A program made the translations under genes and the position numbers. A DNA stretch of 64,000 bases, from assembly GCA_965240325.2 (NCBI GenBank), contig OZ251222.1, positions 4,464,001 to 4,528,000 on the forward strand. Reading direction: 5' to 3'. Positions 6,065 through 55,762 of this stretch are shown here, in pieces. The notes under the pieces are model-generated. The model was given only the letters and a program-made list of their open reading frames with translations. It ran no database searches and had not been told where the DNA came from. The DNA is from Rebecca billardiae RCC1528. Taxonomy: Eukaryota; Protista; Haptophyta. Positions within the stretch are counted from its first letter, which is position 1, and every line of letters starts with the position of its first letter.

Positions 6065-9040
6065 TCAGTGGTGATGCCGCCTGCGATGCCGGCTGCGATC
6101 GGTCATCACCGCGACCGGCCGGCTCATGGGCGGGCTCGCCTTGAAGTAGTTGCTCGGATCCTCCCACGGACGCGAGCCAGGGTCATCGCGCGCGTTGGTG
6201 TACGGCAGGTACTGCGAGGACGGACCGGAGTACGCCTCCGCGTTCCACGACGAGTCGACGGGCGCGGGGCACGGAGCGAGGAAGTCGAGCGCGGGCGGCA
6301 CCTTGACGTTCACGCGCCCCGCCTCCTTGACGGACGCGGGGGCATTCTTGACGCGGAAGAAGTTGCCCATGCCCAGCACGAGGTGAGCCTCCTGCACCGC
6401 CGCGCGCGCGCGCATCGTGGGCCGGGCGCGCGCCACCACGCGGCGCCGGTGAGAAGTGGTGGTGGTGGCGGCTCGGCGCGGCGCGCGCACCATGTGGCAG
6501 TGCATGAACCACACGCCCGGGTTCTTGGCGACGAAGCGCAGGTACGCCCACGACTTGTACATGACGGTCACGGTGTCGACGCACAGCGCGTCCTTCTCGT
6601 TGAGGCTGGCGCGGTCGCGCTTGGGCTCGTACCGGCCCTCGCCCATGCCGAGGACGTGGAAGCAGTGGCCGTGCAGGTGCCACGGGTGCACCTCGGTCGG
6701 GTCGTCGTTGTTCAGCACGAGGTCGACCACCTCGCCGTACTCGATGTCGAACGCGGCGGCGCCGAACTGCTTGTCGGCGGACTGCTGCCCGCGCCGGATC
6801 AGGTTGTACGCGAGCGAGGCGTCGAGCTTGGTGCCGCCCTGCTCCATGAGCGACTGCGCGAGGAAGGGCACGCGCGGCTTGTCCGCGGTGGGCAGCAGCG
6901 GGCTGCCCACCTCGCTGAACGAGATGTTGTACACCGCCCAGCGGAACCACTCCGCGTCCTCGGGCGCGGACACCATGCCCGGCCCGACCAGCTTCGCCGT
7001 CTCGGGCGGCAGCTGGCCCGGCCACCACACGTTGAAGAGCATGTCGATCGGCTCGCGCAGCTTCTGCCCGCGCTCGGCGCGCGGGACGGGCGGGTTGTAG
7101 CCGTCCACAAAGCTGCCCTGGCCCCGGCTCGGCGGGAGCGGCTTGAACATCTGCGTCTCGATGCCGACCCGCACCATCTTGTCGCGCTCCTCGTTCGTGA
7201 GCGACTGGTACCAGTTCACGCCCGTGTACCCGGAGTCGAGCTCGTCGCCCGCGCCCACGTAGGACAGGACGGCCTGCGCGGCCGGCAGCCTGTAGTTGAC
7301 GTTGGCGCCTGCGCGCGCACGGCGGTCGCGTCCGCGCGTGGGCGAGCGCCCCAGCACGCGCGCCCCCTCCCCGCCCCGCCCCGCCGCCGCCACCCGCGCG
7401 CGCGTCCGCGGCCGCGCGCGCGCGGCCGCACCGGTGCAGAAGTCCTTGAGCGTCATCGGCCCGCCCCACTTGACGTCCGGGTTGCCCACGAGCGGGGCGA
7501 GCTCGTTGGTGCACTCGGGCGAGGCGGCCTGCCGCCCCCACGTGGAGACGACCATCGGGTAGTTGGTGCCCGTCTGCCCGCTCGCCTCGAGGACGACCGA
7601 GTAGCGCTGCCCGAGGTTGATCATCAGCGAGTCCACCTTCGTGGGCTGCAGCCACACGCCGCCGGCCTGCACCACCGTCATCGAGTGCCCCGGGATCGTC
7701 AGGTTGTACGGCAGCAGCGCCCCCGCCGCCACGATGCGCAGCAGGTACGACTTGCCCGGCTCCACGAAGAAGCGGCTGAAGTAGTTCACGTCCTTCTTGT
7801 TGCACGGCGCGGCTGGGAGCTGGCGGTCGCCGGGCAGCCAGCCGGGGCCAGCGAGGCCCTTGCCGTTGACGAGCAGCGACTGCGGGTTGCCCACCCAGTA
7901 GCTGCGCCGAGCGCGCGCAGGGAAGAAGCCCGCAAGCGCGCGAGAGCCCGGTCAGGCGCGCACGCGCCGTGGCGCGCGGGCAGCGGGCGCGGGCACGCGC
8001 GCTCGCGGCGCGCGCGCATACGGGTACTGGCGCGAGAGGCCCCACTCCATCGAGTCGCCCGAGTGGTTCCACCAGCCGTGGATCAGCATCACGGGCAGCT
8101 CCTCGTCGTAAGGCGGGATGCCCTTGGGCCGCTCGGTGCCGCGCCGTGGTAGGATCACAAACGCGCCAAACATGCCGTCCTGCACTGCGCACCGCGGGGG
8201 CGGCGGGCGCGGGCACGGGCGGGCGGGGCGCGGCGGCGGGGGGGGGGGGGGGGGGGCACGCGATGGGAGGGTCGCGCGCCACGCGCGCGCGTGTGAGGGG
8301 GAGATGCCGATGCGCGCCGCTCGCCCGCGCCGCCGCCGCGCGCTCCGCACAGCCGCGCGCCGCCGGGCCGCGCGCGCGCACTGTCCAGGCCCATGTGCGC
8401 GTGCCACCAGTGGGTGCCCGGCGCCTCGTCCGCCGTGTCGATCACGTACGTAAAGCTGCGGCACGCGCGGCGGCACGCGGTCGCGCGCCTCGCGTGAGCC
8501 ACCCGCGTCCCGCGGCGTGCGAGGCCCGAGGCCGCGCGCGCGCAGCGCGGCGCACCTCTGGTTGAAGCCGATCGGGCACTGCGTCACGTAGCCGACGCCG
8601 TCGTACCACTGCTTGCCGCGCATCTGGAGGCCGTGCCAGTGCACGGTCATGCCCTGCCGGATGTTGTGCCCCTGGTCCTTGCGCACCATCAGGTTTGTCA
8701 CGTGCACCTCCACAATGTCGCCCTGCTCGACGCGCACCTCGGGGCCGGGGAATTGGCCGTTGCACGTGATGTGCTGCCGCTTGTTCCCGTGGCGGTCGGT
8801 GCCACCGTAACAGTCCGGGTCGAGCTGGCGGTTGATCGTGAACGTCCAGTCGTACTTGACCACGCGCCTCGAGTTGCGGTGCCAGGGATGCCCCTCGAGC
8901 GACGCGTCACGGTCGCCGAGCATCAACTTGTCAGGGTCCTCGCGTACCGGCTTCGCGAGCCAGATCGCGCACAGCGCAAGAAACGCGAGAGAGACGAGCG
9001 CACACGCGCCCATCACAGCCGAGCGGCGAGCCTCCGCCAT
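6065..9040 (-). CDS. Multicopper oxidase (laccase/ascorbate oxidase-like), N-terminal signal anchor, 5 introns
   Basis: Copper motifs TVHWHG, WWHAH, HPWHLHGH, WFMHCHM|EAHLVLGM; GT-AG introns about 8456-8555, 8186-8381, 7902-8021, 7308-7433, 6392-6490. Confidence 0.95.
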
Positions 9041-45879: not shown

Positions 45880-46737
45880 ATGACGACGGCTGTGCTTACC
45901 GTGGGCAAGGGCAAGCGTTCCTGCGCGAAGCCGAAGAAGGTCAAGCTGCAGCGGAAGGGCGGCTACGGCATCGGGCGCAAGGTCTCTGCCGCATCTGTGC
46001 GGCGGCGCATGGCCGCGGCGGCCGCGGAGAAGGCGGCTGAGCACGAGACGCTCATGCTGCGCGCGCGCGAGGCGGCGAGCGAGGTGGACCACTCGATCAT
46101 GCCGAACGAGAACTACCTGGCGGAGGTCAAGCGCAAGGTCAACAACTTCGTCGCCATCAAGGGCAGCCGGAAGAAGGGCAACCTGCTGCGCAAGGCCAAG
46201 CTGGCGCTGTTCCCGCGTGACGCCCTCTACTCGCCGATGTTCACCTCGCTCGACGACCAGGGCGTCGTGCACGAGACGCGAGAGAAGGACCGCACGCGGC
46301 GCACCGTGAGCTCGTACCAGCCCGAGCGCATCTCGACGTGGCTCAACCTGGGCATGCGCCGCGTCCCGAAGCCGCTGCGGGCGAACGCGCTCGGCGGCGC
46401 GCGCACGGACCGGCACCTCTCGGCGATCAACACGGTGCACTCGCTCTCGATCGAGCACACCGAGATGCATCGGCTCGATCCGGACGGCGCGTACCAGCAG
46501 TTCGCGCACGTGCGCGTGGGCGTGATCTCGCTCAACGCGCAGGGCGGCCTGCACGCGCCACAGGACGCGCAGGGCGGCGTGAGCGTCGACGCCGAGCGCT
46601 ACGCGCTGATGCAGCCATGGCGCTTCAAGAAGGAGAAGGGGCGCGCTGACGTGAGCGGCGAGCTGCTCAAGGTGTGCGCGCAGGGCGTCTCGATGCGCCG
46701 CGGCGGAGGCGGGGCTGGCGGCGCACGCCGTCTGTGA
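45880..46737 (+). CDS. Transposon ORF1 (basic, 285 aa) or first exon of the transposase
   Basis: ATG ORF with strong coding bias and Lys/Arg-rich NLS-like N-terminus; candidate donor AAG|GTGTGC at 46672. Confidence 0.7.
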   Translation: MTTAVLTVGKGKRSCAKPKKVKLQRKGGYGIGRKVSAASVRRRMAAAAAEKAAEHETLMLRAREAASEVDHSIMPNENYLAEVKRKVNNFVAIKGSRKKGNLLRKAKLALFPRDALYSPMFTSLDDQGVVHETREKDRTRRTVSSYQPERISTWLNLGMRRVPKPLRANALGGARTDRHLSAINTVHSLSIEHTEMHRLDPDGAYQQFAHVRVGVISLNAQGGLHAPQDAQGGVSVDAERYALMQPWRFKKEKGRADVSGELLKVCAQGVSMRRGGGGAGGARRL

Positions 46738-49700
46738 CGAAGGGCCCGTCGGAGCTCACGGGCGCGCCGCCGGCAGCGCCTGCCGCGGCGCCCGCCGCGG
46801 CGGCACCGGCGGCGCCGCCCGAGTCCGACGTCTCACGGCGCAAGCGCGCGGACTGGAAAGCGCGCCGCGCGCAGCGCGAGCAGCTGACCGCCACTCGCCG
46901 AGCAGCGAGCAGCGCCCGATGGCGTCGCGCGCCAGCTGGTGACGGCGCGGTCGCGCCGCATCCCCCCCTCGATCTCTCTGCCCTCGATCCCACGCATGCC
47001 CATCTGCATTCTCATTCTCAGCCTCTCTCGCATGTTCCAGTCCTCGGTCTCACGCCCGGCCTCTGCGCCGACGCGCCATCCGATCCATCGTCCGCCGCCG
47101 TGATGCCCTACGCGGTCGCGGACACCCAGCCGCTGCCTCCGTTGGGGCCGCCGCCGCTGCCGTCGCTTCCGCCACCGCCGCAGCTGCCGTCGGCGCCTCC
47201 GCACCTGCCTCCGCCGCTCGTGCAGCCGCCGCAGCCGCGGCCGCGGCCGCGGCCGCGGCCGCAGCCGCAGCCGCTGTCCTCGCCGCATGATGCCGCCCGT
47301 CCACCGACCGCGCGCGCGCTCGCTCTCCTTCGAGCTGATGGCGGCGAGGCGGCGGCATCAGCCGCCGCCGCCGCCGCCGATTTGTCTCCCGCCGTCGTCG
47401 CTGCCCGCTTCTCGTCTCTTCCCGCTCACGCCGACCACCTCGTCTTCTCGCCCGCCACTACCAACGCCTCCTCCGCCTTGAGCTTTCCTGCTGCCGCTGC
47501 GCCGTCGCCCGCGGTCACGCGCAGCGCCTCCCGCCAGCCCGCGCCGCCACTCCTCCTCGCTGGCGCGGCGGCGCAGCCGTTCGTCGGTGGGTCGGCGGAA
47601 GAGCTGCTGCCGCCGAGGTCACCTGCCGTCGCCTCGCCCGCCTTCATGTCGCCGCCGCCTGCCGTGCTGCTCTCGGCCGCGCCCACCCGCCAGCGGCCTC
47701 TCACGCGCTCGGCTGGCAGCGTGGCGCCGACGCCCGAGGCAGAGGCGGACGAGCAGACAGCACGGGGTCGAAGGCGCATGGCCGAGCTGCAGCACGTGGC
47801 CGAGCTCGAGCAGCAGTTGCGGCGCTCGCACAGCACGCGCAGCGTCCCTTCCGAGCTCGAGCTCACCTCGCTGCGCACACGTGTGACCGAGCTCGAGCAC
47901 TTCAACGGCGAGCTCGAGCGCGAGCGCGACGACGCGGTGCGGCAGCGCGAGGACATCGTCAACTCGGCCGCCGTCGATCTCGAGCCGGTTCTCGACGTGG
48001 TGATCGCCGCCGTCAAGCTCGAGTGCGAGAACATCGAGCGCGAGGCCCTCGACCGGATCGCCGCCGCGCGCGCCGCCGCTGCTGCCGCGGAGAGGCGCGC
48101 TGTGCTCGCCGGGTACCGCGCCGGGCACAGCGCGGATGCGCGCACCCGCCACGACGCCGAGGCGGAGCAGGCGCAGGCGAAGCTTCGGCGCGATCTCGAA
48201 GAGGCGAACGCGCGGGCCGCAGCTGCGCAGCGCGCCGCCGACGCGCAGCGCGATCGGGCCCTCGAGTTGGAGCGCCGCCTCACCGCGACCGAGCACATCG
48301 CCGCTGACGCGCTGAGCGGCGTCGAGCACGAGCTCGCGGCTGCGCTGCACGCGCAGCAGCTGCTCGAGCAGCAGTGCGCGCACGCCCAGTCGCTCTGCGA
48401 CGAGCAGCAGTCGCAGCTTGTCGAGCTCAAGCGCGACAAGGACGCCGCGCGCAAGCGCGCCGACCGAGCCGCCGGCAAGTTCGAGCACCTCGCCGAGCTG
48501 AACGGGCTGGACGGCGCTCATCGGCAGCGCGCTCAGCGCCCATCTCTCTCGGTCTCGAGCAACGCGTGCCGCAAGCGCAGGCGGGGGGAGGCGGACCATA
48601 TCGAGCACATCCTGCGTGGCACGCCCGACGACGTGATGGACCTCGTGCTGCACGAGATGCTCGAGGGCGCAGACGACGGCTCGCGCAAGCCGTGGGCGAG
48701 GCACGCCTACCTCCAGCAGCGCCGCGGCGCAGTGGGCGTTGTGCGCGAGATTCAATCTCATCAGACGCACCACGACGTCGCCGGCTACCTCGTCTCGAAG
48801 AACGTCACGGACGCGCAGTTCGACACGTGGCGCGAGTGGGTGGGGAAGGAGATCCACCCGGTGACGGGCGAGCACTCGGCTCGCACCGTCTTCCGCGGCG
48901 GCTTCGGCCGCGAGCCGATCCGCCACCCGATCCCGCCGCCGGCGGCTGGCTCTCGAGAGGTCGCGCAGCGCGATCGCGAGCACGCGGGCGCGGGCGTGCT
49001 CATGATCGGCAGCGAGTCGGCGGCGCGGCCGTGGGCGCAGGCCGTGCACGCCGTGCTGGATCGCTCGGAGCGCAACGGCAAGTCCGCGCGCCCGCGCGGG
49101 CAGCCGCACGTCCTCCTCCTCTCGGCGGACGCGGGCAACACGGCTCACTCGCGCACGGCCACGATCGCCATCGTGCGCAACGGCTGGGGCGTCAACTACG
49201 GCGCGCTCGCGTCGTCAGAGGCGATCGCCATCTCGGAGCGGCCGGACTCGGACATGTCCGAGTTATGGAGTGCGCACGCCGACGCGATCAATGACGTGAT
49301 CCGGAGCGGCCTGCTTCCGCCGCGACCGACGCCGCCTGCTGCCGCCACCGCACGTGTGGCCGGCGCGGCCGGCGGCGCGGCCGCGGCCGTCACAGCCGGC
49401 GCGGCCGGCGGCGCGGGCCGCGGCGAGGCCCGCGGCGCGGCCGGCGGCGCGGCCGGCGGCACGGCCGGCGGCACGGCCGGCGGCACGGCCGGCGCGGGCG
49501 GCGCGGGCGGCAGCGGCAGCGGCGTGGCTGGCGGCACCGCCGGCGCTGGCGTCCGCGCGGCCGGCGGCGCGGCCGGCGGCGCGGCTGGTAACGCGGGCGC
49601 GGGCGCTGGCGGCGGCGCGGGCGGCGCGGGCGGCGCGGGCGGCAGCGGCAGCGGCAGCGGCGTGGCTGGCGGCACCGCCGGCGCTGGCGTCCGCGCGGCC

Positions 49701-51419
49701 GGTGGCGCGGCCGGCGGCGCGGCGAGCAGCGCGGCTGGCAACCCGAGCGCGGGCACGGCCGGCGGCGCGGCCGCCGCGGCCGCCGCGGCCGCCGCGGCCG
49801 CCGCGGCCGGCGGCGCGGCCGGCGCGGCCGGCGCGGCCGGCGCGGCCGGCGCTGCCGGCGCGGCGGGCGGCGCGGCCGGCGGCGGTTTTGGCGGCGGCGG
49901 CGAGGCGGCCGACTACGCGGAGGAGCAGAAGGCCATCATCACGTACACCGGCGATTATGTCAACCTTGCCAGCCTCGCCGGCCAGGGCTCGCACAACGTC
50001 TCGCCGCTCCGCTTCAACGTGTGGGCGGTCAAGGAGGCGGGCGCGGACGGCGGCTCGCCTCAGTGGCGGCTGCGCACGTACAAGCGCGCGCGCGCGCTGT
50101 GCCACGCGGACCCGGGCGTGACGTGCCCTGCGTGCAAGGTCACGCCTGCCGACCAGGGCGAGTGCGACGCCGAGATGACCAAGCGCCGCCGCCTTCTCGC
50201 CGACGACTCGAAGGACGCCGAGCGCATCGTCGACCAGAAGCTGCACGAGAACCAGTGGCTGCTACCGCAGCTGGAGCTCGAGCACGTCAACTACTTCCCC
50301 GGCATCATGCACTTCAAGCACGACACTTTCAAGCCGGTGCTGTCGGCGCTGTGGAGGGAGGTGGACGAGCTGTACGGCCGCGACGCGCCGCTCACCAAGT
50401 ACGACCTGATCGTCCTGTTCAAGAACGCGGGCGTGCCTGTGCGAGTGCCCAAGCGGCGCACGCGCACCAACGAGATCGGCGTGCCCGACCTCCGCGGCGA
50501 CGGCATCTCGCTGCTGCGCACGCACGCGGTCTTCTGGGCGTTGGTGCAGGTCGTGTGGAAGATCGACGCGGATCTCGACGGCGCGAGCAGCGCGGGCGCG
50601 GCGGACAGCGGCGACGAGGACGCGCGCATCTCGGACATGCAGGACGAGGAGGAGCGCGAGATGATGGACGAGATCGGCTTTGACGACGAGGCGCAGTTGA
50701 AGGCCGAGATCGCGGACATGCCGCGCATGGCACTCTTCTGCCGCCTGCTCATGCTCACGTGGCAGCTGCACGACCTCGTCTCCTCGCGCGGCTACACGGA
50801 CGATGACGATGGCCGCGCGAAGCGTGCGGACGAGGTTGAGGCAGCCGCGACGGCGTGGGTCGAGGCGCTCGACCTGTTCGTCCTCAAGCCGGTCACCTCG
50901 CAGTACAAGACGATCGCGCGGTTCGTCTTGCCTCTGCTGATCAGGCGGTGGGGCCACCTCGTGCAGCTCGCGGACGAGCAGGTGCAGGAGCACTTCGTGC
51001 AGGTGACCAAGCGGGCGATGCCGCTCGTGAACGCGCGCAAGTCGCTCGACTCGTTCGTCCGCGAGTATGCCGAGGGGAAGAAGTCGACGGTGCAGCCGCA
51101 CATCTCGACGGCCGCGCAGCTCCTGCGCCGCGTGTCGCTTGCGACGTGGGCGGAGGAGGAGTTCGGCGACAAGGTGCGGCGGCTCTGGCTGAAGAAGGAG
51201 GGCAAGCGGCAGCGCGAATGGCAGCGCAAGGCGAAGGCCGGCGCGCACGACCTGGTCGACGAGTACATCGCGGCGCGCAAGCTCGTGCGCGAGGAGGCTG
51301 GGCTTCCGGAGGAGGACTTGTCGGCACTCAAGAGCAAATTGAGGGCGGCGGCGCGCTCGGCCTCGGCGACGGTGAGCGACGGCGCGGATGTCGCGCGCGA
51401 CGGCAGCGGGGCTGGGTAG
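46674..51419 (+). CDS. DDE transposase with RAG1-core/Transib/Chapaev-like motif order
   Basis: LLLSADAG (D1), YTGDYVNLASLAG (D2), CPAC, HENQ..LPQL...FPGIMH, LRGD, YKT..RFVLPLLIRRWGHL..LADEQVQEH (E); uninterrupted 4.7-kb frame; true start uncertain. Confidence 0.8.
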   Translation: MRAGRLDAPRRRRGWRRTPSVTKGPSELTGAPPAAPAAAPAAAAPAAPPESDVSRRKRADWKARRAQREQLTATRRAASSARWRRAPAGDGAVAPHPPLDLSALDPTHAHLHSHSQPLSHVPVLGLTPGLCADAPSDPSSAAVMPYAVADTQPLPPLGPPPLPSLPPPPQLPSAPPHLPPPLVQPPQPRPRPRPRPQPQPLSSPHDAARPPTARALALLRADGGEAAASAAAAAADLSPAVVAARFSSLPAHADHLVFSPATTNASSALSFPAAAAPSPAVTRSASRQPAPPLLLAGAAAQPFVGGSAEELLPPRSPAVASPAFMSPPPAVLLSAAPTRQRPLTRSAGSVAPTPEAEADEQTARGRRRMAELQHVAELEQQLRRSHSTRSVPSELELTSLRTRVTELEHFNGELERERDDAVRQREDIVNSAAVDLEPVLDVVIAAVKLECENIEREALDRIAAARAAAAAAERRAVLAGYRAGHSADARTRHDAEAEQAQAKLRRDLEEANARAAAAQRAADAQRDRALELERRLTATEHIAADALSGVEHELAAALHAQQLLEQQCAHAQSLCDEQQSQLVELKRDKDAARKRADRAAGKFEHLAELNGLDGAHRQRAQRPSLSVSSNACRKRRRGEADHIEHILRGTPDDVMDLVLHEMLEGADDGSRKPWARHAYLQQRRGAVGVVREIQSHQTHHDVAGYLVSKNVTDAQFDTWREWVGKEIHPVTGEHSARTVFRGGFGREPIRHPIPPPAAGSREVAQRDREHAGAGVLMIGSESAARPWAQAVHAVLDRSERNGKSARPRGQPHVLLLSADAGNTAHSRTATIAIVRNGWGVNYGALASSEAIAISERPDSDMSELWSAHADAINDVIRSGLLPPRPTPPAAATARVAGAAGGAAAAVTAGAAGGAGRGEARGAAGGAAGGTAGGTAGGTAGAGGAGGSGSGVAGGTAGAGVRAAGGAAGGAAGNAGAGAGGGAGGAGGAGGSGSGSGVAGGTAGAGVRAAGGAAGGAASSAAGNPSAGTAGGAAAAAAAAAAAAAAGGAAGAAGAAGAAGAAGAAGGAAGGGFGGGGEAADYAEEQKAIITYTGDYVNLASLAGQGSHNVSPLRFNVWAVKEAGADGGSPQWRLRTYKRARALCHADPGVTCPACKVTPADQGECDAEMTKRRRLLADDSKDAERIVDQKLHENQWLLPQLELEHVNYFPGIMHFKHDTFKPVLSALWREVDELYGRDAPLTKYDLIVLFKNAGVPVRVPKRRTRTNEIGVPDLRGDGISLLRTHAVFWALVQVVWKIDADLDGASSAGAADSGDEDARISDMQDEEEREMMDEIGFDDEAQLKAEIADMPRMALFCRLLMLTWQLHDLVSSRGYTDDDDGRAKRADEVEAAATAWVEALDLFVLKPVTSQYKTIARFVLPLLIRRWGHLVQLADEQVQEHFVQVTKRAMPLVNARKSLDSFVREYAEGKKSTVQPHISTAAQLLRRVSLATWAEEEFGDKVRRLWLKKEGKRQREWQRKAKAGAHDLVDEYIAARKLVREEAGLPEEDLSALKSKLRAAARSASATVSDGADVARDGSGAG

Positions 51420-52070: not shown

Positions 52071-54412
52071 TCAGTGCGCGTGCTGCGCCGCCGAGGGCAT
52101 CGCGGAGATGCTGCGGATCGAGGGCGTGGGCTTGGTCCCGTCGAGCTCGACCTGGAAGTCGAAGACCGAGCCGTCGTGCATGTGCACCGACAGCCCCTCC
52201 GCGGCCGCAAACTTGTACCGCAGCTGTCGCCTCGGGTTTGGCGGCTGCGCGCCCACCGCCTGCTCGATGGCGGCGCGGCCGCGCAGCTCGCCGAGCTCGC
52301 CGCTCCACACGCCGTCGTCGGTGAAGAAGGACGCGGCGACCGCGCCGTCGCGGTTGTCCACCGCGTCGAGGAACCGCGCGAGCAGCTCGCGCGCCGAGTT
52401 GCGCGGCGCGTACGTGGTGTGCAGCTCCTGGTGCGCCGTGTGCGAGAGCGGCTCGCCCAGCCACGCCTTGTACAGCTGCTGCACCTCCGTGTTCTCGTGC
52501 GACATGCGGACGGGCATGTCCTTGTCCGCGCCGTAGATGCCCGCCGCGCGGCGCTCGAGGATGTCGGGCAGGTCGCTCTTGGGCTCGCCGCCGCCGCCGA
52601 GGCAGCCGCCCTTGCACGCCATCACCTGCGGCGCGAAAGGTCGGGCGCGGAGGGGGCGGCGGGGCGGCGCGCGTGAGCGGCGGCGCGGCGCGGCGCGGCG
52701 CGCGCGGCGCGGCGCGGCGCGGCGCGCACCTCGATCATGAGGTGGTTCCGCCAGCTCTGGTCCTCGCCGTTGAGCAGCTCGACGGCCGCGCCGATCGAGC
52801 TCACCACCGCGACGCTGCCCAGCCCCTCGATGGTGGCGGTCTTGACGCCCGCCTGCACGCCGCGCACGCCCTGCCACTCGAGGGGCATGTCCTTCATGCC
52901 GAGCAGCGCGGTCGTGGCGGTGCGCAGCGCGGCCTCCATCACGCCGCCGCTCGCGCCGAAGATGACGGCGGCGCCGGTCGACGCGCCGAGCGGCGAGTCG
53001 TACGTCGCGTCGTTCGGCAGCGAGGCGAACGGGATCTTGCGGTGGCGGATCATGCGCGCGAGCTCGCGCGTCGTGATGGCGGCGTCGACGTCGCCGCGCA
53101 TCCCCGGCCGCACCGCCTCGTCCTTCTTCGCCGTGCACGGCATGATCGAGACGACGAAGGGCTCGTCGTCCTCGTCCTCGTACGAGTCGCCCTCGCGCTC
53201 CCTGCGCACCTCGCGCAGCTTCTCGACGAACGGCCCGCGCTTGGTGATGGCGGCGTGCATCTGCTGCGGCGACTTGGCGGTGCTCAGGTGCGGGATCAGG
53301 TCCGGCCGGTGGATCTCCACGTAGTTCACCCAGCCGGGGCAGCACGAGGTGAAGAGCGGGAGCGGGCCGGCGCCCTCGGTGACGCGCTTGACGAGCTCGG
53401 TCCCCTCCTCCATGATCGTCAGGTCCGCCGAGAAGTTCGTGTCGAGCACGTAGTCGAAGCCGAGCGCCTTGAGCGCGGACACCATCCGGCCGGTCGAGAC
53501 GCTCCCGGGCTCGAACCCAAACTCCTCGCCGATCGCGATGCGCGTGGCGGGCGCGGTCTGCACGACGGTGGTGCGCCGCTTCGTGTCGAGCACCTCGAGC
53601 ACGCGCTGCCAGTCCGGCCGCTCCGTCAGCGCGCCGACCGGGCAGCGCAGCGTGCACTGCCCGCACGAGATGCAGCCCGTGTCCTTGAGCGGCTGGTCAA
53701 ACACCGTGATCGGCAGCTGCCCGAACCCGCGCTCGCCAAAGCCGATGCAGTGGAGCTTCTGGCCCTGCGGCCCGCACGCGTCGACGCACAGGCCGCACTC
53801 GATGCACTTGCTCATGTCGCGCGCGATCGCCGGCGACGAGTGGTCCACGAGCGCGTGCTCGCCCACGTGGTCCTCGGCGGTGCCGTGGCCGCGCTCGATC
53901 TTGGGCCACTTCTCGACCAGCTGCTCCTCCTGCACGAGCGACTGCAGCTTGCACTGGCCTGCACACACGGGGGGGCGCGGGGCGCGACGCGGCGGGCGCG
54001 ACGCGACGTGTCGGGCCGACGCGCCGCGCGGCGCGCGGCGCGCCGGCGCGCCGGCGTGTGCGACGATGCCGCGCGCTCACGCACCGTTCACCTCGCACCG
54101 CATGCACTCGTTCGGGTGGCGCGCGAGCATCATCTCGAGCTCGGTGCGGCGGTACTGCTTGAGCTCAGCCGTGTCCGTGTTGATCACCTGCCCCTCGAGC
54201 GCCGTCGTGTAGCAGGCCGGCAGCGGCTTGCCCGAGCCCTGAACGTCGACGAGGCACATACGGCACACCGCGCGCTGCTTGAACTGCGGGTGGTAGCAGA
54301 GCACTGGCACGCGCATGCCCGCCTCCTTGATGGCATCGAGGATCGTCGAGCCCTGGGGCACCTTCACCGACTTTCGGTTGACCACGAGCGAGACGAGCTC
54401 CTTGAGCACCAT
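52071..54412 (-). CDS. hydA: [FeFe]-hydrogenase (group A, with F-clusters) plus C-terminal SnoaL/NTF2-like domain
   Basis: 2Fe-2S PVLCY..VCRMC..PAC; HPNECMRC..C; CIECGLC..C and CISCGQC..CP; H-cluster FTSCCPGW, MPCTAKKDE, E|VMACKGGCLGGGG; SHEN..LHTTY; introns 53959-54084 and 52626-52729. Confidence 0.96.
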
Positions 54413-54824
54413 GTCAACGGTAGGGGCGCCGCGCCGCCGCCGCCGATCGCCGCCGAACGCACCCAACTCCAACCCGTCCGCGTGTGAGCCGTGGACGGCA
54501 GCGCGTTTGATTTGCCAATCGACCGAGCTGGGTGAGCGGGCAGCTCGTCGGCGGCCCAATCAGAAGGTGGCGCCGCCGGAGATCGCAGAGCCCGGCCCCT
54601 GAAGTCGCTCTCCCAATTGGCGGAGCCGCGAAAGCGCGGAGCCCAGGCGCACCAAAGATGTCCCTTGGATGTCCCGTCCCGACCAACCGTTGACCAGCTT
54701 TGGCAGTCTTCAAAAGTTGAAATGAAAAAGCCGCCATCATTGTTTTCGCGGCGTTTTCGAGTTTCCCCATTTTTCATCAGCAGAGCAGTAGCGGAGCCAA
54801 GCGCGTGCCGCCTGATCAGCTGCG

Positions 54825-55762
54825 ATGGCTGACGCGGGGAGCCTCGCGCTGCTCCCCGAGGAGGAAGTCCGCCACGTGCAGCAGCAGACGACGTTGTACG
54901 CAGGGCCGACCGCCGCCCCAGCGGCTGGGACGCTCTATATCACGACGAGGTGTGCGTCCGCGCCACGCCGCGCCCCATCTCTCCCGGCGTGGTCATGACG
55001 CGCCCGGCGCGCGCGCGTGCGCCGTCCCGATACGTGCCCATTCGCAGGAGGGTTGCGTGGGTCAAGGCTGGCGCGGAAGGCGCAGACGGCGTGCAAGCGT
55101 TTGACTACCCATCGATCGCACTGCACGCTGTGTGCACGGACACGTCCACGTTCCCCCACCCGTGCCTGTACTGCCAGCTCGACCTCGAGGGCGAGGAGGC
55201 GCATGAGCCGGAGTCGGGCATTGCCGCATGGATGGGCGGGGCTGCCCCCACGACGCAGGGCGGCGGCGGCGACGACGCGATGGGGGGCGCGGCCGACGAC
55301 GAGGCCCACGAGAACGGCGCAGACGCGGCCGACGGCGCCGTCGGCGAGCTCCGCTTCGTGCCCGCCGATCCGTCCAGCCTGGACGCCATCTTTGCGGCCA
55401 TGTCCGCGTGCGCAGCGCTCCATCCGACCGGCGACGAGGATGAGGACGAGGACGAGGACGAGGATGACGAGGACTTCGACGGCGAGCACGATGGGGTCTA
55501 CGCCGATGGTGGCATGATCTCGGGCGGGCTCATCACCTCTGAGGCCGACCTCACCGCGGAGCAGCGTGCGATGCTCGAGCGCTTCGATGCGATCCTGCAT
55601 GTGCCTGACGGCGCAGCGCATGAGCATACGGATGGAGGCGCCACGGCCGCGCGCGTCACGGATGCCACCCGGGCTGTCGAGGAGCTCGCACGGACCGACC
55701 CTGGACGCTTCGCCGATGCTGGCGAGGGGCATGCGATGGAGGCCGATGGCGATGGCAAATGA
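54825..55762 (+). CDS. CLNS1A: Methylosome subunit pICln (Voldacs domain)
   Basis: GTLYITTR|RVAW, YPSIALHAV, CLYCQLD, ELRFVP, IFAAMSACAALHP, acidic tract; intron 54950-55047. Confidence 0.9.

Follow-up and report, generated by a model that had tools for sequence, protein, structure and literature searches.

A nuclear [FeFe]-hydrogenase gene with an NTF2/SnoaL-like C-terminal domain in the haptophyte Rebecca billardiae

Introduction

Why does a chlorophyll a/c alga carry a nuclear gene for a hydrogenase of bacterial type, and what is the domain attached to the end of the protein that it encodes? Both questions are raised by a gene on the minus strand of a 64,000-nt stretch of DNA from Rebecca billardiae RCC1528 (hereafter the window, in whose positions the coordinates of the algal features are given). 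A first-pass annotation, made from the sequence alone, had described a complete [FeFe]-hydrogenase with a SnoaL-like tail and had proposed that it serves H2 metabolism in the cytosol. Our analysis makes it probable that the gene encodes an intact nuclear hydrogenase of M3 architecture, tailed and leaderless, that belongs to a laterally transferred clade. The new findings are that such a gene is present in a chlorophyll a/c alga other than a diatom, and that an NTF2-like domain characterizes its clade as a whole.

Results

Is the predicted protein a true [FeFe]-hydrogenase? The three motifs of group A, L1 (TSCCPxW), L2 (MPCxxK) and L3 (ExMACxxGCxxGGGxP), are all intact in its translation. Motif 1 reads TSCCPGW (53330..53350) and provides the proton-transfer Cys315 and the ligand Cys316, motif 2 reads MPCTAKK (53123..53143) and provides Cys384, and motif 3, VMACKGGCLGGGGEP (52581..52625), provides Cys523 and Cys527, the Glu that precedes it being encoded by the final codon of exon 2 (52732..52730). 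Conservation of the H-cluster ligands, the proton-transfer Cys and the motifs around them is complete or almost complete in 91 full-length relatives, with invariant columns in motifs 1 and 2. In motif 3, an alignment of 92 C-terminal parts shows C4, C8 and the flanking Gly run to be nearly invariant (at least 90%) and P15 and S17 invariant. An identity with Nar1/NARF was rejected because TSCCPGW, with its proton-transfer Cys, and the full L3 are intact; on this point the first-pass annotation, which had read the same motifs, was right.

Ahead of these motifs lie four accessory iron–sulfur sites. The first is a plant-ferredoxin-like 2Fe-2S domain (54170..54397; Fer2_4 on residues 6–81, with Cys39, 50, 53 and 67). 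The second is a His-ligated 4Fe-4S site (53951..54118; His99, Cys103, Cys106 and Cys112, with PF10588 at residues 88–109), which lies across intron 1, so that its H-x3-C-x2-C-x5-C pattern is read over the junction of exons 1 and 2. The remaining two are ferredoxin-type 4Fe-4S motifs (53642..53806; Cys161/164/167/171 and Cys205/208/211/215, with Fer4_7 and Fer4_9 on exon-2 residues 50–109), whose eight Cys form two copies of CxxCxxCxxxC. Behind the H-domain comes a small-subunit-like helical segment (52401..52565; Fe_hyd_SSU on exon-3 residues 21–75), which wraps the H-domain in enzymes of the CpI type. In Pfam, the protein matches Fer2_4 (2.7e-16), NADH-G_4Fe-4S_3, the two ferredoxin-type 4Fe-4S motifs, Fe_hyd_lg_C (7.2e-68) and Fe_hyd_SSU (3e-24), and the TIGR02512 model scores 389 bits with exon 2 by itself and 412–440 bits (cut-off 406) with full-length relatives. 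The presence of all 16 accessory-cluster ligands together with the fused small-subunit-like C-terminus defines the M3 (CpI-type) architecture, and the bacterial-type F-clusters noticed in the first pass are a complete F-domain of the bacterial M3 kind.

A structural model of the full-length relative P0001, used as a stand-in for the window protein, has a predicted template-modelling score (pTM) of 0.86. Its residues 23–594 superpose on CpI, the M3 prototype from Clostridium pasteurianum, with Z ~50 and a root-mean-square deviation of 2.5 Å over ~550 residues, and, judged by this model, residues 1–594 share their fold and every cofactor site with CpI and with the HydA1 of electron-bifurcating HydABC complexes. 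In the structure comparison, no solved hydrogenase extended past about residue 602 of the model, and none reached into residues 595–705. Judged from its sequence, then, the gene is an intact nuclear group A [FeFe]-hydrogenase gene of M3 architecture, residues 1–594 of which are equivalent to CpI.

The exact start-to-stop coding interval is 54412..52071 on the minus strand, as first annotated, with three exons, two GT-AG introns and 703 residues. Exon 1 (54085..54412; ATG 54412..54410) holds 109 codons and one base of the Gly codon that intron 1 splits; it encodes the 2Fe-2S domain and the beginning of the His-ligated 4Fe-4S motif and aligns with residues 11–116 of the intronless relative P0010. 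Excision of intron 1 (53959..54084; 126 nt, GTGCGT...TGCAG, phase 1, GC 0.86) leaves C-E-V-N-G-Q-C-K-L, contiguous as in the relatives. Exon 2 (52730..53958) begins with the rest of the His-ligated motif, continues through the pair of ferredoxin-type 4Fe-4S motifs and holds the greater part of the H-domain, with L1 and L2. Intron 2 (52626..52729; 104 nt, GTGCGC...CGCAG, phase 0, GC 0.91) separates the E of H-cluster motif 3 from its VMAC, and exon 3 (52071..52625) runs in one unbroken frame through the rest of that motif, the small-subunit-like helices and the NTF2/SnoaL-like tail to the stop TGA (52073..52071).

When the exons were aligned separately to intronless relatives, no residue was lost at the junctions: on P0010, exon 1 reaches residue 116, the Gly of the split codon is residue 117, exon 2 extends over 118–505 and exon 3 sets in at 506. 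The in-frame third-position GC is 0.94 in exon 1, 0.99 in exon 2, 0.98 in exon 3 and 0.97 in the tail, and the introns and flanks show no frame preference. Both introns are GC-richer than the exons (0.86 and 0.91 vs 0.65–0.72) and consist largely of GGCGCG-type repeats; exons in the genome of this very GC-rich alga are told by the periodicity of third-position GC, not by overall GC.

What is the C-terminal tail? It comprises the last 109 residues (52074..52400; residues 595–703 overall, exon-3 residues 76–184) and matches SnoaL_2 (4.9e-7; 30.7 bits, cut-off 27), SnoaL_4 (6.3e-7; 29.9 bits, cut-off 24) and DUF4440 (1.1e-5) in Pfam. AlphaFold2 was run on exon 3 with 91 aligned C-terminal parts of relatives. 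In the resulting model, the predicted local distance difference test score (pLDDT) of the tail is ~90 or more nearly throughout, one 10-residue block averaging 80, and the predicted order is helix-helix-strand-strand-helix-strand-strand-strand. The best Foldseek matches of this model are all NTF2-like (E ~2e-5 to 3e-4) and include 5tgn, ketosteroid isomerases, limonene epoxide hydrolase and SgcJ; its look-alikes in the protein atlas are likewise all SnoaL/NTF2 clusters. The Pfam scores above the gathering cut-offs and the predicted alpha+beta cone fold place the tail among the SnoaL/NTF2-like domains, to which the first-pass annotation had assigned it by eye. Furthermore, the tail and motif 3 share one uninterrupted exon, and because this exon stays open with an in-frame third-position GC of coding type, the tail would be translated as part of the protein and not spliced out.

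Could this tail be a further catalytic domain, or one that binds a small molecule, akin to SnoaL cyclases, ketosteroid isomerases or epoxide hydrolases, so that the protein would be bifunctional or ligand-gated? Enzymes of the NTF2-like superfamily are among the matches to its predicted fold. In an alignment of 92 C-terminal parts, of which 76 match SnoaL_2 by themselves, the tail columns D90, R92, D93, P129 and F157 are among the invariant ones, R136 and H137 are nearly invariant, and R75, S77 and R79 in the segment just ahead of the tail are invariant; such polar tail columns (D90, R92, D93, R136, H137) would suit an active site. However, the invariant acidic residues sit in a helix-turn motif that is general to SnoaL_2 and DUF4440 and is not a mapped active site, and the window protein has Tyr in place of the His137 that is found in 90% of relatives. 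Moreover, a length of ~109 residues is near the minimum for this fold, as it is in 5tgn (function unknown), and the Pfam profile is matched only at positions 2–67 of 102. We consider a second enzyme quite improbable, and the ligand binding that had been proposed for the tail is not established. Instead, the acidic residues in a common helix-turn signature, the Tyr for the conserved His and the minimal domain size point, weakly, to a structural, docking or oligomerization module, seated on the last helix of the catalytic body, as the likeliest role of the tail.

How widespread is this layout? A word-based protein search with exon 2 found thousands of relatives, the best with 69% identity and none identical. 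Among the 120 best, 105 are 670–716 residues long and have C-terminal parts that align with that of the window protein; the tail, which was new to the first-pass annotation, is a shared feature of these hydrogenases and not a peculiarity of this alga. That annotation had itself named an already widespread architecture as a ground for refutation, and its novelty claim falls on this count. The named bacterial members are Thiomicrorhabdus, Hydrogenovibrio, Thioclava and Pseudoduganella, joined by metagenome-assembled genomes of Thioalkalispiraceae, Thiotrichales and Acidithiobacillales, and the hosts of the bacterial members are aerobic or microaerobic Proteobacteria. The named eukaryotic members are the diatoms Thalassiosira profunda, Skeletonema marinoi, S. 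menzelii and Attheya and the fungus Hyaloraphidium. Further members lie on clearly eukaryotic contigs, recognizable by genes for 7tm_3 and ABC proteins (L002), a protein kinase and ATR (L011), or MAPEG and ubiquitin (L003/L004). A metagenome scan with exon 1 found no relative closer than 62% identity, and there was no Diacronema protein among the best hydrogenase matches.

We built a maximum-likelihood tree of 65 rows (IQ-TREE, posterior mean site frequency C20 model, quick search), which is unrooted, as it has no outgroup. It separates 21 eukaryote-type rows, including the window protein, from Hyaloraphidium and 43 bacterial rows, with an SH-like approximate likelihood ratio support of 97–99. 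The rows nearest to the window protein are P0017 and P0008, on long branches and with weak support (82–85). The hydrogenase of T. pseudonana has been described as the product of a separate lateral transfer, grouping with Proteobacteria and apart from other eukaryotic hydrogenases (PMC10407231; PMC4989108), and the proteins of the Thiomicrospira lineage have been classed in HydDB group A1, a placement made without biochemical data (PMC4744846). On sequence grounds, the Rebecca gene belongs to this published Thalassiosira/proteobacterial clade, in which the tail is ancestral and nearly universal. Because the clade joins stand-alone proteobacterial genes with nuclear genes of eukaryotes, the copy of the alga would derive from a gene passed laterally between bacteria and eukaryotes.

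Might the sequence instead be bacterial contamination, or a very recent and non-functional insertion? Bacterial proteins are indeed 60–64% identical to it over exon 2. On the other hand, the gene has two spliceosomal introns and host-type third-position GC (0.94–0.99), lies head to head with a pICln gene in a window that holds other eukaryotic genes, and has eukaryotic sequences as its nearest relatives in the tree. The introns and the codon usage effectively refute contamination, to which we give next to no credence. The gene is a genuine nuclear one, as its introns had already led the first-pass annotation to state, and with its introns, host codon bias and eukaryotic neighbor, the transferred copy is now fully domesticated.

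Two of the eukaryotic relatives deserve separate mention. The gene for P0018 (L011, a contig of 49% GC) has GTAAG-type introns at ~7560–7640 and ~7930–8010, one in the GGCLGG|GEP motif and one in the tail; as these positions differ from those of the window gene, the introns were presumably gained independently after the transfer. P0008 (L003–L006) is an intronless, leaderless copy in a compact marine eukaryote of ~62% GC with AT-rich spacers. Its cluster has 37 members from Tara Oceans and other marine runs, and its presence on many ocean contigs suggests that the hydrogenase clade is common in open-ocean picoeukaryotes.

Where in the cell would the protein reside? Translation from the ATG at 54412 gives five residues ahead of the bacterial start, so that residue 6 of the window protein corresponds to residue 1 of the bacterial proteins and of P0008. 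Upstream of 54412, the frame is open to 54559 and holds no in-frame ATG. The coding-type GC bias begins exactly at this ATG, the first 14 codons already showing it, and P0008, seen on four contigs, has no extension and an in-frame stop 21 codons upstream. These results agree with the first-pass annotation, which had seen no evident targeting peptide. Nor does the protein show the endoplasmic reticulum (ER) signal peptide and transit peptide of a hydrogenase targeted to a complex plastid. As the start lies only five residues ahead of the bacterial one, the protein would lack an N-terminal leader and be cytosolic by default.

Most other eukaryote-type relatives, however, have N-terminal extensions of 10–35 (up to ~60) residues in which Lys, Arg, Ala and Ser abound and acidic residues are scarce, and which are not hydrophobic; those of the diatoms are basic and 12–35 residues long. 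In most of 25 eukaryote-type relatives, no 12-residue stretch of the extension has a Kyte-Doolittle mean above 1.1, and in the two longest extensions, those of P0019 and P0021, the maximum reaches 1.6–1.8, which is moderately hydrophobic. Because most extensions lack a hydrophobic stretch of signal strength, they would contain no ER signal peptide, and most of these relatives would not be targeted to a complex plastid. In our judgement, which is not the result of a predictor, the longer extensions look like mitochondrial presequences.

Could the Rebecca protein, then, also be organellar, probably mitochondrial, through an unrecognized 5′ exon or an atypical internal signal, such that the hydrogenase would meet its maturases inside the organelle? 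Apart from the basic, acid-poor extensions of most relatives, an in-frame ATG upstream of P0017 would add MFRRVVPWGRRL to that protein. In addition, an out-of-frame ATG-initiated open reading frame (ORF; 54770..54414) lies upstream of the window gene and opens with M-G-K-L-E-N-A-A-K, similar to the M-N-K-L-T-N-A-A-K of P0018, and in-frame GT-AG joins from it to exon 1 exist. We compared the N-terminal extensions of the relatives with both upstream candidate segments, using shuffles, and enumerated all in-frame GT/GC-AG joins to exon 1. The likeness to P0018 is confined to the first nine residues, and its shuffle p of ~5e-4 over 36 comparisons barely survives correction. The two upstream segments have a third-position GC of 0.51 and 0.73, flat across the frames, against 0.94–0.99 in every real exon, and the ORF at 54770 shows no codon bias in any frame; we rejected it as a missed 5′ exon, the resemblance being probably due to chance. 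Furthermore, tblastn of the relatives gave no significant match upstream of exon 1, the candidate splice sites either bear little likeness to those of the two introns of the gene or combine a good donor with a weak acceptor, no in-frame ATG lies between the upstream stop and 54412, and P0008 manages without any extension. An organellar location is in our view unlikely, and the leaderless start at 54412 is preferred. The cytosolic H2 metabolism of the first-pass annotation nevertheless goes beyond this evidence, given the basic N-terminal extensions of the diatom relatives.

The upstream region (54413..54824) is probably a 5′ untranslated region together with a bidirectional promoter. It is shared with a divergent pICln gene and contains an AT-rich dip at 54701–54780 (GC 0.40–0.45). 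The pICln/Voldacs gene (54825–55762, plus strand; PF03517, 3.9e-30) lies head to head with the hydrogenase gene at a distance of 412 bp, has at least one intron after a short first exon, and is a eukaryotic housekeeping neighbor that shares the promoter dip. On the other side, an ORF of 1581 residues (46674–51419, plus strand) with long low-complexity runs of Ala, Gly and Pro ends ~650 bp from the hydrogenase stop.

In four bacterial genomes, we found no HydB or HydC, no HydE, HydF or HydG, and no conserved partner within 10 kb of the hydrogenase gene. In Thiomicrorhabdus xiamenensis (L001, 3426–12073), the gene is directly downstream of the genes for the large and small subunits of glutamate synthase (gltBD) and of an ORF of 124 residues that has no Pfam match; the gltBD arrangement is absent in Hydrogenovibrio, Thioclava and Pseudoduganella. 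In Pseudoduganella, the next gene encodes a cytochrome b of the Ni_hydr_CYTB type, which is not shared by the other three genomes.

Discussion

How might such an enzyme work? From what is established for CpI-type enzymes, we infer the following route. HydE, HydF and HydG would first insert the 2Fe subcluster. A low-potential carrier of the ferredoxin or flavodoxin type would then exchange electrons with the enzyme via the 2Fe-2S or the His-ligated cluster at its surface, and these electrons would move on to the H-cluster by way of the two ferredoxin-type clusters. Protons would arrive by the Cys315 pathway, and the enzyme would interconvert protons and H2. In dark or hypoxic conditions, the enzyme could serve as a redox valve.

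Several observations weigh against the view of an intact, working-type hydrogenase with a structural tail. In T. pseudonana, H2 was barely detectable and no maturases were found in the genome (PMC10407231; PMC8003979), strains of the Thiomicrospira lineage that carry the gene did not consume H2 (PMC4744846), and in the literature that we searched, hydrogenase activity is reported for no member of the clade. The 5′ end, both introns and the expression of the Rebecca gene are predicted from sequence and homology, and the structural role given to the tail is likewise inference only.

Could the clade, therefore, consist of redox or sensor proteins derived from hydrogenases, which are not, or only rarely, matured with the 2Fe subcluster in vivo? 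The absence of activity in T. pseudonana, a species reported to be without HydEFG, the failure of Thiomicrospira strains with the gene to take up H2, and the orphan state of the bacterial genes, which have no adjacent maturase or partner genes and sit in mostly aerobic hosts, would all fit such a loss. On the other hand, the H-cluster ligands, the proton-transfer Cys and the motifs are kept across the 91 full-length relatives and the window protein, which would not be expected without catalysis, and the NARF-type proteins, which are known non-catalytic derivatives, have lost these motifs. We regard a non-catalytic clade as rather improbable and retain the reading of an intact hydrogenase.

That the clade occurs mostly in oxygen-exposed organisms is not explained by the reading that we favor. 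It is conceivable, though doubtful, that the tailed clade is an undescribed subclass of group A, seen almost only in such organisms, in which the tail would alter the enzyme by capping the gas or proton route, by docking a partner, or by an oligomerization that protects or gates the H-cluster.

How does the Rebecca hydrogenase compare with known ones? The hydrogenases of Thalassiosirales and Attheya, including that of T. pseudonana (B8CGB6), belong to the same clade and have the M3 body and a homologous tail; over exon 2, the window protein is 65–69% identical to the cluster members from T. profunda, Skeletonema and Attheya. The window gene differs from the diatom genes in where its introns lie and in having no basic N-terminal extension of 12–35 residues. 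The uncharacterized proteobacterial hydrogenases of ~690 residues are identical to it in architecture from end to end, the tail included, with 60–64% identity over exon 2 and ~41–48% over exon 3. Their genes, however, are intronless and stand alone, and they fall on the opposite side of the tree split supported at 97–99.

Among solved structures, the closest sequences are the HydA1 subunits of HydABC from T. kivui (8a6t, 7e-95) and A. woodii (7q4v, 2e-91), followed by CpI (1e-77). No solved hydrogenase, CpI and these HydA1 structures included, has an NTF2-like tail. The NCBIfam model for "group A6" (NF040763) is the best-matching model, but the scores of P0001 (655) and P0044 (662) remain below its cut-off of 765; with this and with no adjacent HydB or HydC in the four bacterial genomes, the protein would not be of the electron-bifurcating or NADH-dependent HydABC type (A6, or A3 in HydDB). 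The HydA1 of Chlamydomonas (M1) and the HydA of Chlorella variabilis, which has an F-domain, are likewise [FeFe]-hydrogenases encoded in algal nuclei, and they are matured by HydEF and HydG. Chlamydomonas HydA1, however, lacks the F-domain, is plastid-targeted, belongs to a different lineage of group A and has no described tail; its structures align only to residues 235–592 of the P0001 model.

The tail itself has its counterparts in stand-alone SnoaL_2/NTF2-like proteins (5tgn, that is Sthe_2403; SgcJ/EcaC; ketosteroid isomerase), which share its predicted alpha+beta cone fold and its Pfam families. Against 5tgn, the Foldseek TM-score normalized to the target is 0.57–0.64. Whereas these proteins are free-standing and often enzymes or dimers, in the window protein the domain forms one chain with a hydrogenase, attached to its last helix. 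Literature searches that combined SnoaL or NTF2 with [FeFe]-hydrogenase gave nothing relevant, the matches to "NTF2" being the triflimide anion, and a recent review of [FeFe]-hydrogenase diversity had no match for "C-terminal", "Proteobacteria", "diatom" or "stramenopile".

Conclusions

The find demonstrates neither a new kind of system nor cytosolic H2 metabolism. It adds a second lineage of chlorophyll a/c algae, one outside the diatoms, to the range of the "Thalassiosira-type" hydrogenase of proteobacterial affinity. Furthermore, it brings to light a conserved C-terminal NTF2-like domain on more than 100 database hydrogenases, of which the searchable literature makes no mention. For hydrogenase biochemists, this tail offers a concrete comparison, that of the enzyme with it and without it.

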